Shown here: one piece after another, positions 5,106-30,223 of the stretch | How positions within the stretch are numbered: position 1 is the stretch's first letter | Layout of the letters: every line of letters begins with the position of its first letter | Origin: Phallusia mammillata | Taxonomy: Eukaryota | Reading direction: 5' to 3' | Assembly (NCBI GenBank): GCA_965637545.1 | Contig: OZ281497.1 | Location: forward strand, 6,138,001 to 6,202,000 | DNA: 64,000 nt | The notes under the pieces: model-generated | Told to the model about the DNA's origin: nothing | Seen by the model: only the letters and a program-made list of their open reading frames with translations | Databases searched by the model: none | Translations under genes and position numbers: made by a program

Positions 5106-8100
5106 ATGAAAATGTACTGTCTGCTATTCGGCCTGATTTGTATCCACAGTGTTTGCGGTAAGTATGTTTGGGTTATATATGACCACAAGAATATTATTCA
5201 AATCACAGTACTTGTTTTTTGTTTACAATTCTCAAAGATATTTAGATCTTTCAATCTTTTATATTGTCCTTGACTTCGTTACACGACCACGTAGTGCTTG
5301 TTGTAAATTAAAAATACGATTTGAAAAAAAAAAGAAATTGAAATAGTTAAGACTCGAAATGAAATTGAATTAGTTAAGTCGATTTAAAAAAAAATTGAAA
5401 TAGTAATGTGTATAAACTGTGAAAGATTGCACTGTAACTTAACTTTTGTGCTTACCGCAGGTGTCACTTTTCAACAGTTGAATTGTGGACAACCGGCAAT
5501 TTCTCCACTTTCGATATCAAAAGTGAGTTTTCTTATTTTGTGAGAACTTCTAATCAAGTGAGCGTAAAAGAAATAATTTGTAAGACAATTAAGACAATTA
5601 AAATAGACTTTTATTTTGTAAAGCTTAACTTTTTAGTATGTCAGCTTCCATTTCGTTTTTTTTTAATCAAGGGTGTACGCATTATTGGCGGCAGCGAAGC
5701 AACACCTGGCTCTTGGCCTTGGCAAGTTCGTTTGATTCTAGACTTCGGGGCCGGCGGACAAATTCTTTGTGGTGGCTCTATTTTAAATGAGAACTGGATT
5801 GTGACCGCTGCGCAGTGCGTGCTGAACGAACCGTAAGTTTAATAAATGCAATTTCGGAAATAAAAGTTCGTGTGTCTGGTTTGTTAAAATAACATTGCGT
5901 CAGGCTTTATTAACTTATGTTTTAACATGTTACATCTTTTGTACCTGTTAAAAAACGTTTTGCTTTGAAATATCCATTCTGAATTTAAGTGAAAGATGTA
6001 AGTTAAATCTTCTTAGATACACAATACAAAGCGTTGAAGTGCAAATTGGTTTACACAACGTTGGAGACACAATCGGAATTCAAAATGCATCTGTAGCCAC
6101 AGTTAGATACCATTCGAACTACGACAGGTATGTTAATGAAACTTTAAAGATGCAAAATATTTTTTGCTTGATTTAATTAAATCTAATATTATGGTTTGCA
6201 AATCTGAAGCAATTTATTCATAAACGACATTGCGGTATTGGAACTCCGTTCTCCACTGTCGTTTACATCAACCGTGAGCCCAATATGTCTACCCGAAGAC
6301 ACAGTTATTGTTACAAGCACATCTACATGTTTTGCGACGGGTTGGGGCCGTACAGGTAGGTTACGTTACTTGGCTGATAAAACAAGTTGCTTCCCCCAGT
6401 TTGCAAACGCAAAAGACATCTCCCAAAAAACTGTACAAACAAAAAGGGTTTTATCAAAAATAGCGGGTTGTACAAAAAATGTAAGCCAAAAAACGTTGTT
6501 TATTTATTGACAGCCGATATTTTTACCATTACGGTTTGCATTTACAAATACTTAATGCATTTGGCACTTACTTCATACATTTGGCACTAAGTTTTTTATG
6601 ACGGGGTTCGAACCCATGACAGTTCCGGGGACGAATCCCGATTAAGGTTTTTTCTGCCTTCCAAGCCCCTCAATTTGAGCCTTTGTTTGGAATAATACTA
6701 TTTGGGGACACAACCTAGTGTTAGTAATCATGCTTATTATAATAGTAATTATTAGCGATTTACAAAACCTGTATAAATTATAACTAAAAACAAGTGTATT
6801 TGTTGCAAAGTTCCTGAAGGAAACTTCTCCAATGTTCTACAAGAAGTACAACTAAATGTCATATCTAATACTGTTTGTGGCCTTCAATACACAAACATTG
6901 ACGGTACGCACATCTGTGCAGGTGGCAGCGGCAGGTCGACTTGCAATGTAAGTTTTTCTATTATAGCTTAACTGGCACTCTAAAGGTCGGATCATTTATT
7001 AGCGTAAATAAAAAAAATGTGCCATCAACTAATATTGTTACTCCCGGCTTCATTTAGATTTGGCTGTAAATCTGTCTAATGATAACATTTATTAGATTTC
7101 TGCATGGTTATTTTGACAGGGTGACGGCGGTGGGCCTTTGGCTTGTTATATAAGTGAACGGTGGTACTTGATGGGAATTGCATCGTTTGGTAAAGAGCTC
7201 TGTAACACAGTTGGTGATACGGCAAGTGTCTTTACAAGAACATCGGAATACGTTGGATGGATTAATCAAGGTAAGCAAGGAAACAAGATTTTAAGTTGTG
7301 TGGAATTCTGACAAGTATGACTTGTGGAAACGAGTCTCGTAAAACATTTGCTTTCCTACTGTTATTACCCAGCCGTGCGCAAGTTCCTATATGAAACACT
7401 TGTTAAAAGTTTGCAATCTCAAATACTCATCCCCTCCTAATGTAGAAAGATGACAAATGTTTCTCTTTATCTTTGTTTATTACTACGAGCCACATTCCAT
7501 TTCACTGTTAGAACTCATATAAAGCACTTCTAACCCAATTTCCTGCCTATTTATCATCTCTTAAGTATGTCTACGTCTAGAAAAAAATGTTGATACGCTT
7601 TGAAAGCTACAAATATCATCATTGGTTGCTTTGCTTGTCAAACAAATTTAATGTTTTTAGCGATCGGCGATACTACAACAACGTCAACGACCAGTACCAG
7701 CAGCACCAACCGTGAGTTATTATGTTCGTTATAAATATTCTGTAAAACGCTAATCTTTGATCAAAAACCTGAACATAATGACTGGGTTATGCAGAGTAGG
7801 GCTGAAAAATGAGGATTTTTCTAATTAGTTAATCATGCGAGTTTGAGATATTGATCACCTAAACCGTTTTGTATTCCTACGGCTGTTGTTACTCTGGTTC
7901 AAAAAAGGTACAATGTCTGAGTGAAAAACTCACACATTCCTAAGACCCCAGTCCAGTGGTTCTTAACCTTTTTGTAGTCACGGACCCCTTTTATGAATTT
8001 TGTAAGTCTGCGGACCCCCAACGCCTTTTACCCTTTTTTTTTTTTTAAGTCTTTTTATGTTTCACGTTTCTTGCATTATACCCTGTCATGCTTTTGAAGC

Positions 8101-9145
8101 ATTTAAATCCACCTTCACAGTCCTTTAAAATCAATGACGTTTCTGTATTGTAGTGGCCAACGCATCGAATTGGTAATATTTCTGGTATATATAACTTCAC
8201 AGATCACTTGTCCTATAAAGTCTATTGTCAATGTGTGTTATGATGTCACAATAGGGAAGACAATCACAAAAAGTAATTGTTCCTGGCATAATTAAGGTGT
8301 AATAAACAGCGTGCACTCGTATGCAGGATTGTAAAAACGGTTGAGAATCTTATAAATATTCTTTTGTTGGTTAATGATACTTAACATTTTTCCCTCCGTG
8401 GACCCCCTAAAACCATCTCACGGACCCCTTGGGGGTCCGCGAACCCCAGGTTAAGAACCACTGCCCTAGTCATTTTATGTAGACCTAGAACAAGAACCTC
8501 TTAAAACCCCAGAATTGGGTCTCACCTTCTGCATTGGCCTTTTACGAAAATATTATGTGAGAGCTGTCGCATAAATCAGGGGTCGACAACCTTTTTTTCC
8601 TCTGCGGACCGTTTTTGAAAGTAAAATTTTATCGCGGACTCGTCCTCAAAAAACAGTATTTAGTAATAAAAACGCTTAAATTAGTCTATCATCCCATAGG
8701 CAAAATGTTTGTAGTATTTACCCTGAAAAATTGTACGGCCCGGTAACGAAATCAATCCTCGCGGACCGGCAGTTGCCGACCACTGACATAAATAATATCT
8801 TTTGACAAATTGATTTGAAAACCAATTATTTAAACTCATATTTTTTGCCATCAAATACCACACCAAACGTATTTAGCACATTGATTGTTTTGAACTATAA
8901 CCTTAAACACACAAAACCAATAAACTTGACACCAATGCCTGTGACACCCAATACTTGACGCCTTTAGAAGTAATGTACCCTTATTAAATGTGTAAATTGT
9001 ATGTGCAAGTAAGATTAGCTGATTATAATCATGTATTTTTTACGACATCACAGCTGCAACAACATCTTCGACTGGAAAACTAGCAGGCACCAAATGTCCA
9101 ATGATATTAGGCTACTTATTTGTAGCAGTAGTGTTGTTTGTTTAG
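5106..9145 (+). CDS. S1 serine protease homologue, copy 1, catalytically inactive (His57->Gln, Ser195->Gly), with signal peptide, T/S stalk and GPI-like tail
   Basis: Exons 5106-5157 ([17 protein letters not shown]), 5461-5522, 5672-5832 (R|IIGG, WPWQV, TAAQC), 6017-6127, 6210-6355 (NDIAVL, PICL, TGWG), 6811-6947, 7120-7270 (GDGGGP), 7661-7711 ([12 protein letters not shown]) and 9054-9145 ([13 protein letters not shown]). All are GT-AG and in frame. Confidence 0.88.
7954..8463. mobile_element. hAT (Buster-type) MITE, 510 bp, in intron 8 of copy 1
   Basis: TIR CAGTGGTTCTTAACC / GGTTAAGAACCACTG; TSD CCCCAGTC / CCCTAGTC. The empty site (single CCCTAGTC) is visible in copy 3 near 21307. Confidence 0.92.
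8577..8785. mobile_element. hAT MITE, 209 bp, in intron 8 of copy 1
   Basis: Ends CAGGGGTCGACAAC / GTTGCCGACCACTG; TSD GCATAAAT / ACATAAAT. The empty site (single ACATAAAT) is in copy 4 near 29857. Confidence 0.85.
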
Positions 9146-29400: not shown

Positions 29401-30223
29401 GCTTTGCTTGTCAAACAAATATAATGTTTTTAGCGATCAGCGATACTACAACAGTGTCAACCACCAGCGTTTCAACTACCAGCAGCACTAATCGTGAGTT
29501 ATTATGCTCGTTATAAATATTCTGTAAAAAAACTAATCTTTGGTTCAAAACCTGAACTTATTGACTGCATTATGTAGAGTAGGGCTGATAAATGAGGGTT
29601 TTTCAAATTAGTTAACCATGCGACTTTTAGAAAATGATCAACTAAACCGTTTTGTATTCCTACGGCCGTTGTTACTCTGGTTCAAAAAAGGTACAATGTC
29701 TAAATGAAAAATTCATACATACCCAAGACCCGTAGCCTTTTTATTTGGACCTAGACCAAGAACTTCTAAAACCGTTCTAAAAAGAATTAGGTCTCCCCTT
29801 GGATATATATGTAGCGTTTTTGGGCCTTGTTACGAAATTGTTATGTTAAAGCTGTCACATAAATTATCTCTTTTGACAAATTGATTTGACAACCAATTGT
29901 TTAAACTCATATTTGCAATAAAACACCACACCAAAGGTATTTAGCACATTTATTGTTTATAACCTTAAACACACAAAAGCCAATAAACTTAACATCATAC
30001 TTGTGACAACCAATACATACAAAAATAATATGCATTAAGAAGTAATTTACCCTTATTGAATGTGTAAATTGTATGTGCAAGTAAGATTAGCTGATTATAA
30101 TCACGTCTGTTTTACGACATTACAGCTCCAACAACATCTTCGACTGAAAAACTAGCAGGCATCAAATGCCCAGTGATATTAGGCTACTTATTTGTAGCAG
30201 TAGTGTTGTTTGCTTTGCCATGA
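26499..30223 (+). CDS. S1 serine protease, copy 4 (older paralogue), triad intact
   Basis: Exons 26499-26550, 27439-27500, 27679-27839 (R|IIGG, TAAHC), 28043-28153, 28226-28374, 28575-28711, 28902-29052 (GDSGGP), 29434-29493 and 30126-30223 ([14 protein letters not shown]). Confidence 0.9.
26720..26812 (+). pseudogene. Possible relic CUB-domain exon in intron 1 of copy 4
   Basis: An acceptor TTTGTAG is followed by TASTAGYI, a frameshift, then [15 protein letters not shown], resembling the CUB GxITSPN...CxWxIxAP motif. Confidence 0.4.

Follow-up and report, generated by a model that had tools for sequence, protein, structure and literature searches.

What becomes of a surface protease gene after its catalytic residues have been replaced: is the product kept in another role, or does the gene decay? 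This question is raised by a tandem array of four trypsin-family genes in the sea squirt Phallusia mammillata, in which the first two genes, copies 1 and 2, have lost both His57 and Ser195. The window analysed here is the whole stretch of 64,000 nucleotides that holds the array (assembly GCA_965637545.1, contig OZ281497.1, positions 6,138,001 to 6,202,000 of the forward strand), and positions are counted from its first letter unless they carry the prefix C4. An initial annotation had proposed that these two copies lost the two residues but kept everything else, through selection for a non-catalytic surface binder or decoy whose dosage then doubled. Our results support the catalytic loss, revise the account of what was kept, and leave a retained binding protein as the reading that we consider slightly better than an even bet.

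Catalytic loss in two putatively tethered protease homologues

A motif scan and a self-comparison of the window revealed the trypsin-family gene four times in tandem on the plus strand. Exon models for the four copies were built by hand from the four-copy alignment. Each copy has nine exons, with AG/GT at every internal boundary and the terminal stop as the sole stop codon; the coding lengths of copies 1 to 4 are 963, 963, 999 and 981 nucleotides, all multiples of three, and the proteins have 320-332 residues. The G+C content of the array is 34-38%, the window is free of N and the genome measures 240 Mb. On this chromosome arm the parent family numbers six or seven genes at the least, including a fifth member, c0, upstream of the window, and c5 and a seventh copy about 165-175 kb downstream of copy 1. 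The gene models are as follows.

5106..9145, + strand: copy 1 (dead), 320 residues plus stop; exons 5106-5157, 5461-5522, 5672-5832, 6017-6127, 6210-6355, 6811-6947, 7120-7270, 7661-7711, 9054-9145
11515..15542, + strand: copy 2 (dead), coding sequence identical to copy 1; exons 11515-11566, 11870-11931, 12081-12241, 12426-12536, 12619-12764, 13220-13356, 13529-13679, 14070-14120, 15451-15542
17912..22011, + strand: copy 3 (His57, Asp102 and Ser195 intact), 332 residues, sister of copies 1 and 2; exons 17912-17963, 18832-18893, 19152-19312, 19497-19607, 19680-19828, 20182-20318, 20491-20641, 21037-21087, 21887-22011
26499..30223, + strand: copy 4 (triad intact), 326 residues; exons 26499-26550, 27439-27500, 27679-27839, 28043-28153, 28226-28374, 28575-28711, 28902-29052, 29434-29493, 30126-30223
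C4:6133271-6137399, 3 kb upstream of the window: c0, with its own signal exon and an intact triad, and with Phe instead of Arg at position 15 before I-I-G-G

Residues were numbered by alignment to bovine chymotrypsinogen A (1acb_E), which confirmed positions 57 and 195. By this numbering the codons of interest in the dead copies are these (a slash marks the activation cleavage).

5813..5815 (copy 1) and 12222-12224 (copy 2), + strand: CAG, Gln at chymotrypsin position 57, in the motif V-T-A-A-Q-C; CAC in the other five paralogues
7126..7128 (copy 1) and 13535-13537 (copy 2), + strand: GGC, Gly at position 195, in the motif G-D-G-G-G-P; TCC, two adjacent base changes away, in the other paralogues
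5678..5683, + strand: activation site Arg15/Ile16 (CGC ATT), retained in the dead copies
6226..6228, + strand: Asp102 (GAC), retained in copy 1
7123-7125, + strand: Asp194, retained in the dead copies

Copies 3 and 4 read TAAHC (CAC at 19293 and 27820) and GDSGGP (TCC at 20497 and 28908) at the same places, so the contrast first noted between the two pairs of copies holds at each codon. The full triad of His, Asp and Ser is found in c0, copy 3, copy 4 and c5, and every sequenced member of the family besides copies 1 and 2 carries His and Ser; the dead state is therefore derived. When 14-16 random amino-acid-changing substitutions were simulated, both catalytic codons were struck in 0.24% of the simulations. 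It is well established in the chemistry of S1 peptidases that loss of His57 and Ser195 abolishes peptide-bond hydrolysis. Judged from these codons, copies 1 and 2 are S1A pseudoproteases (serine protease homologues), predicted to be unable to hydrolyse peptide bonds, which agrees with the inactivity attributed to them before.

The loss of the catalytic residues is not accompanied by any disabling lesion. In the dead copies all 16 splice sites are sound, as are the start codon and the signal peptide; none of the 14 cysteines has been lost, nor have the activation site and the tail, and the motifs G-V-R/I-I-G-G and G-D-x-G-G-P are present in all of copies 1-4. The nine-exon models thus bear out the earlier observation of intact frames, splice sites, R/IIGG, Asp102 and hydrophobic tail. 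The statement that everything else was kept is nevertheless wrong. When changes are polarised with c0 and copy 4, the lineage of copies 1 and 2 shows 13-15 amino-acid replacements beyond the two catalytic ones and a one-codon deletion, which is its sole coding indel and is in frame.

These replacements are not spread evenly over the protein. They include, in chymotrypsin numbering, Ser40Ile, His57Gln, Arg100Ile, Leu143Arg, the change of 150-152 from Ser-Val-Ala to Asn-Phe-Ser, Ser195Gly and Thr213Ala, and so alter the prime-side cleft residues 40, 143 and 150-152 and the pocket-wall residue 213. Of some 14 replacements, six lie at catalytic or subsite positions (p about 0.006, for a partition made post hoc and with about 13% of the S1 domain, a share that we assume from knowledge of the fold, counted as such residues). 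The active sister, copy 3, has 0 changes on catalytic or subsite residues. In addition, the dead lineage has gained two N-glycosylation sequons.

6084..6092, + strand: new sequon N-A-S in copies 1 and 2, the product of two derived changes, of Thr to Asn and of Tyr/Phe to Ser
6822..6830, + strand: new sequon N-F-S in copies 1 and 2, at chymotrypsin positions 150-152 in the autolysis loop on the prime side, built by three derived changes

Neither the inferred ancestor nor c0 nor copy 3 has a sequon at these two sites, and simulations with independent substitutions give P = 0.02-0.03 for a gain of at least two new sequons.

The encoded proteins share one architecture. A signal peptide on its own exon is followed by a propeptide (C-G-Q-P-A-I-S-P ... 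G-V-R/I-I-G-G), the S1 domain, a stalk rich in Thr and Ser that two small exons encode, and a hydrophobic tail. Exons 3, 5, 6 and 7 of copy 1 match positions 1-46, 87-130, 134-177 and 178-220 of the Pfam family Trypsin (PF00089), collinearly and each above the cut-off of 20.6 bits; the same exons of copy 3 match likewise, but exon 6 does so at 19.6 bits, just below that cut-off. Exon 4 alone, which would cover PF00089 positions 47-86, gave no Pfam match. Fourteen cysteines align with one another in copies 1, 3 and 4, and these account for the chymotrypsinogen disulfides 42-58, 136-201, 168-182, 191-220 and 1-122, the pairing being taken from the chymotrypsinogen alignment. The C-terminus is laid out in copy 1 as follows.

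9056..9142, + strand: end of the stalk and tail of copy 1, with S-T-G as small residues, then eight spacer residues and a run of 14 hydrophobic ones up to the stop; a signal of the glycosylphosphatidylinositol (GPI) type

The 14 C-terminal hydrophobic residues have a mean hydropathy of 2.4-3.1 with no cytoplasmic residues after them, and the tail region has no Pfam match. The C-terminus looks like a GPI-attachment signal, which would place these proteins on the cell surface.

Several length differences among the copies were also seen. The stalk exon of copy 3 carries a 33-bp in-frame insertion at 21890-21922 that repeats a P-T-T-S-S motif, and stalk length differs among the copies. Intron 8 of copies 1 and 2 contains an insertion of ~510 bp (about 7955-8470 and 14363-14867) with G+C-rich palindromic stretches and without counterpart in copies 3 and 4. 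In intron 1 the dead copies are the shorter ones, lacking ~560 bp that copies 3 and 4 possess.

Duplication of the dead unit in a fast-turning region

Copies 1 and 2 lie on two adjacent units of a tandem repeat, and similar repeats occur elsewhere in the protease cluster.

3819..10228, + strand: first duplication unit, 6410 bp, followed by the second unit at 10229-16625
C4:5960027-5972376 and C4:5987435-6020698: further duplications in the protease cluster, one inverted and two in tandem with a period of about 15.2 kb, plus one block at 97.5%

The repeat is 99.4% identical over 7851 bp and extends for a further 1.44 kb (16626-18066), across sequence upstream of copy 3 and its exon 1. The two units themselves are 99.75% identical, with 16 substitutions and 2 indels in 6.4 kb, none of them coding, and 5 of the 16 substitutions lie in an A/T-rich patch at 9967-9974. 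There is a sharp junction at 3818/3819, upstream of which copy 1 resembles the upstream region of copy 4; copies 2 and 3 are preceded by the 3' flank of the previous copy. Unequal crossing-over at the upstream blocks would leave just such an arrangement. The 1.44-kb upstream block with exon 1 (3819-5260, 10229-11669 and 16626-18066) shows 98.6-99.8% identity among copies 1-3, whereas the gene bodies of copies 1 and 3 fall below it, at 91-93%. This pattern suggests that the promoter region has been homogenised and that the upstream blocks may serve as a substrate for unequal crossing-over. Since the upstream block and exon 1 are nearly identical in the three genes, copies 1-3 probably share their regulation.

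The recent amplification claimed for the dead copies is confirmed by 0 differences in 963 coding positions, which make copy 2 a very recent tandem duplicate. The adaptive doubling of dosage that was attached to it is unsupported. The 254 kb read contains three more duplications, 3-7 kb long and 98.9-99.6% identical, and recent copy gain is for this reason a property of the region and gives no evidence of selection on dose.

Retention weighed against decay and other explanations

Selection on the dead lineage was measured with codons and with introns. Between copies 1 and 3 the Nei-Gojobori method gives a non-synonymous divergence (dN) of 0.033, a synonymous divergence (dS) of 0.105 and a ratio of the two (omega) of 0.31, beside 0.32-0.37 when other family members are paired. 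A codon branch model (GY94, F3x4) was fitted to 300 codons on the tree ((copy 1, copy 3), c0, copy 4). The dead branch has an omega of 0.46, which does not depart from the background of 0.41 (p = 0.80) and for which omega = 1 is not rejected at 5% (p = 0.053); for the active sister branch omega is 0.275 (p = 0.043 against omega = 1). Lineage-specific changes, polarised with copy 4, number 56 on the copy 1 lineage and 68 on the copy 3 lineage at 1949 intron sites, and 26 and 15, respectively, at 963 exon sites. The exon-to-intron substitution ratio is therefore 0.94 in the dead lineage against 0.45 in its active sister (Fisher p = 0.049). The dN/dS comparison that had been suggested for these copies thus yields a value below one on the dead branch, and nothing in it separates that branch from the rest of the family. 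The selection for a binder or decoy that had been proposed is not shown by these results, which relaxation would fit equally well.

The explanation that we favour, by a little more than even chances, is that copies 1 and 2 encode a retained, activation-cleavable but non-catalytic surface protein whose gene was recently duplicated by unequal crossing-over. After the split from active copy 3, His57 became Gln and Ser195 Gly, and on the same lineage the cleft residues 40, 143 and 150-152 and the pocket-wall residue 213 were altered and the two sequons gained. The product would still be made and tethered to the cell surface, activation cleavage would switch it into a protease-like conformation, and it would act by binding and not by cutting. 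Very recently, unequal crossing-over at the upstream blocks, which are almost the same in sequence, would then have doubled the gene, events of this type being common in the cluster. Rates taken from the introns bear on this reading. By our own rough estimate a neutral branch of this length would bring ~4-5 frameshifting indels, ~1 nonsense change and ~1 splice-site hit, and the expected number of hits on the second catalytic codon is ~0.08. A second catalytic hit without a disabling lesion therefore favours retention several-fold, on the same rough estimate. Together with the concentration of replacements at the cleft, the new sequons and the persistence of dead S1 units in the region, it tips the balance towards retention.

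Other results weigh against this reading, and most of them would suit a rival that we consider possible but clearly less probable, namely that copies 1 and 2 are young non-functional genes, knocked out and dispensable in a redundant tandem family and now drifting, with their duplication as a neutral by-product. Constraint on the dead lineage is relaxed about three-fold, its protein having changed ~3 times as much as that of its active sister. Its 13-15 non-synonymous changes are not clearly below the 21 expected if neutral (p = 0.04-0.11), whereas the copy 3 lineage has 5-6 against 25.5 expected (p = 4e-6). The faster change fits relaxation after catalytic loss and is consistent with a retained binder and with early decay alike, the time of inactivation along the branch not being fixed by the data. 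From the lack of frameshifts, neutral decay can be confined loosely to under some half to two-thirds of the branch. The identity of copies 1 and 2 is uninformative on constraint: their gene bodies differ by 5 substitutions and 1 indel, all intronic, with a P of about 0.2 that none would fall in coding sequence, and because the differences are so few the pair has no power as a test. The substitutions of the dead branch are moreover clustered in its introns, with 25 neighbour gaps of <=6 bp against 8.7 expected, although part of this may reflect misalignment near indels. Since the introns are clustered as well, multinucleotide mutation without selection may lie behind the TC to GG change and the pairs of changes that built the sequons. 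For the same reason we do not rely on a simulated P of <=2e-5 for two sequons each arising from paired changes. Gene conversion was considered as a source of the clustered changes and rejected, as no third locus in the assembly is nearer to exons 4 and 6 of copy 1 than copy 3 is. The omega on the dead branch, the raised exon-to-intron ratio, the fast turnover of the region and the high redundancy of the family, exon 3 having no fewer than 139 matches genome-wide, all agree with decay. It is opposed by the intact splice sites, start, signal peptide, cysteines, activation site and tail, by the in-frame nature of the only coding indel, by the low neutral probability of the second catalytic hit, and by the uneven placement of the replacements.

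The remaining explanations appear less probable still. That the pair is an assembly artefact or a copy-number variant of the individual, one dead gene being written twice, is unlikely. Such a reading could draw on the near-identity of the units and on the A/T-rich patch that holds nearly a third of their substitutions, but the junction at 10228/10229 is clean, lies in sequence free of N and matches the genuine boundary at which the flank of copy 2 meets the upstream block of copy 3; no other contig has a copy, similar duplications lie nearby, and the divergence is under that generally expected between sea-squirt haplotypes. The model of the initial annotation, an adaptively selected decoy that would act as an inhibitor sink or substrate trap in gamete recognition or immunity and whose doubled dose was favoured, we hold to be rather improbable. 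Although the retained cleft architecture, activation site and tether would suit a decoy with altered prime-side subsites and glycan pattern, as would the promoter block common to the dead copies and active copy 3 and the gut-expressed Gln-Asp-Gly homologues of beetles (PMC11172050), the dead branch bears no signal of positive selection. The duplication is uninformative and one of several in the region, and a glycan at 150-152 would, together with Arg143, change the prime side, where canonical inhibitors bind, and might even obstruct it. The nearest relatives of the array are digestive-type chymotrypsinogens, stomach-expressed in Ciona, so that the gamete and immune roles are guesses. We are equally doubtful of a paired surface system in which active copies 3 and 4 would work beside co-regulated dead copies 1 and 2, whose cleft and glycans selection would have reshaped to capture an inhibitor, a substrate or a partner while their copy number rises. 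In sum, the story of decoy and dosage has no direct support and is improbable. Least probable of all is the joining of units by exon skipping, from the stalk exon of one unit to exon 2 of the next past the tail and signal exons, into one tethered polyprotease of dead and active domains. Such a splice would stay in frame, since exons 1 and 8 both end, and exon 2 begins, in phase 1 (for example at 7711 and 11870), and the third domain of ascidian HrOvochymase is without the triad (PMC9265791); against this, a conserved start codon, a separate signal-peptide exon and a stop right after the tail are found in every unit, c0 among them.

Relatives of the array and its meaning for the family

Each exon was compared singly with solved sequences. 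Exon 3 comes closest to chymotrypsinogen A (7.7e-14), exon 7 to chymotrypsinogen C (1.1e-9) and elastases, and exon 5 to elastase; prostasin ranks lower (7.5e-7 on exon 7). Position 189 is Ser, not Asp, and the propeptide, with its cysteine, is of the chymotrypsinogen type. By these sequence features the family belongs to the chymotrypsin/elastase-like lineage, to which a stalk and a tail appear to have been added. The prostasin/testisin architecture that had been recognised in these genes is thus apt as an analogy of anchoring and fails as a statement of kinship. Prostasin (PRSS8) and testisin (PRSS21) likewise have a single S1 domain and activation by cleavage, and the tails of the array proteins resemble their C-terminal hydrophobic GPI signal, but they are active, trypsin-like (Asp189) and without a mucin stalk. 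The pancreatic-type enzymes chymotrypsinogen, chymotrypsin C and elastase, on the other hand, are the best matches exon by exon and share the C-G-x-P-A-I propeptide with its cysteine, Ser189 and the disulfides including Cys122; they differ in being soluble, and the array family adds to them a stalk and tail, a three-residue insertion in the 36-loop and dead members. In a search of protein representatives with exon 3 of copy 3, the best 150 matches were multi-domain polyproteases ranked by summed score, among which there was no close single-domain relative. A homologue search scored on exon 3 within a 132-residue open frame of copy 1, and confined to proteins of 73-231 residues, a range too short for the full-length protein, gave no candidate. 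Our search of the literature found no paper on tethered chymotrypsinogen-like tunicate genes of this kind, which is not a claim that none exists. In Ciona, chymotrypsinogen-like genes encode stomach-expressed enzymes (PMC8462739, PMC11277035). On this analogy, a role at the gut surface is at least as plausible for the array as a role in gametes or immunity.

Dead S1 domains that act by binding are well known from vertebrate HGF and MSP, haptoglobin and azurocidin; HGF has Gln57 and azurocidin Gly195. The clip-domain homologues of insect immunity are a further case; those of mosquitoes are non-catalytic yet require activation cleavage (PMC6901238). Copies 1 and 2 resemble all of these in having a dead S1 domain, and several of them need cleavage of the Arg15/Ile16 type. 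Unlike copies 1 and 2, which are very young, these proteins are all old and conserved; they have clip, kringle or other domains or are granule proteins, and none is known to be lipid-anchored. The closest parallel for the residues themselves is in the beetle Tenebrio molitor, in which 125 of 269 family members are dead S1A homologues, His57 is most often replaced by Gln (55 cases) and Ser195 by Gly (26 cases), and SerPH237 and SerPH239 are highly expressed gut homologues with a Gln-Asp-Gly triad (PMC11172050). The beetle and sea-squirt proteins share the S1A fold, a short propeptide with a tryptic activation site, Gln57 and Gly195 with Asp102, and large tandem families in which the dead members stand beside active paralogues. 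In contrast to the array proteins, those of the beetle are soluble and secreted, without stalk or tail, and expression has been shown for the beetle genes. Because the lineages are unrelated, the common triad is convergent. Active and dead S1 units also stand side by side in polyproteases with dead domains, such as HrOvochymase, again in a tunicate, and polyserase. In the array, by contrast, every unit comes with a signal peptide and a stop, so that the units are separate genes barring read-through splicing.

The wider family in this region shows that catalytic loss is not confined to copies 1 and 2. Should c0 be activated at all, its Phe15 would call for an activator with chymotrypsin-like specificity. 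Among 29 exon-3 units in the 254 kb read, 18 have His57, 8 Ser, 2 Gln (copies 1 and 2) and 1 Arg, so that 11 of the 29 are without His57. Two further kinds of dead unit lie in or near the window.

38191-39727, + strand: S1 unit of another subfamily, with Arg57 (T-A-A-R-C) and Arg195 (G-D-R-G-S-P) and with Asp102 and R/IVGG retained
42087-42542 (+ strand) and seven places in C4:5.97-6.11 Mb: type-B S1 units with Ser57, reading S-S-A-S-C or T-S-A-S-C in 8 of 8 copies

The upstream relatives of the unit at 38191-39727 all have His and Ser, which makes it a second, independent double loss less than 10 kb from the array. The Ser57 units, which alternate with active units of two types, look like a dead S1 lineage of greater age that has been conserved; no exon-7 match for this unit type was found with the query used. 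Dead S1 units are thus ordinary in this region. An active-type S1 unit was seen as well, with exon 3 at 46024-46158 and exons 5 and 7 within 62541-63757 (+ strand), about 16 kb apart. Between them lies a separate element at 46258-61394, apparently in an intron of that unit.

Dead S1A homologues and the Gln-Asp-Gly triad are of a kind already known; what is particular here is the youth of the two copies and their apparently tethered, chymotrypsinogen-like architecture. Dead S1 homologues are common and mostly old, so that the steps from enzyme to binder are hidden, but in this array the active sister adjoins the dead copies at a dS of about 0.1. The changes of the dead branch can be listed in full: besides the two catalytic residues they comprise four or five residues of the cleft, a pair of new glycan sites and the loss of one codon. 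The 11 units without His57 are relevant to the annotation of proteases in tunicates, and the paired surface system, if it is true, would be a very young and datable case of a protease turned decoy in a chordate. If copies 1 and 2 are not expressed and constrained, they are a fresh pseudogene in a fast-turning tandem family; if they are, they would offer a natural experiment on the early evolution of a pseudoenzyme in a chordate.

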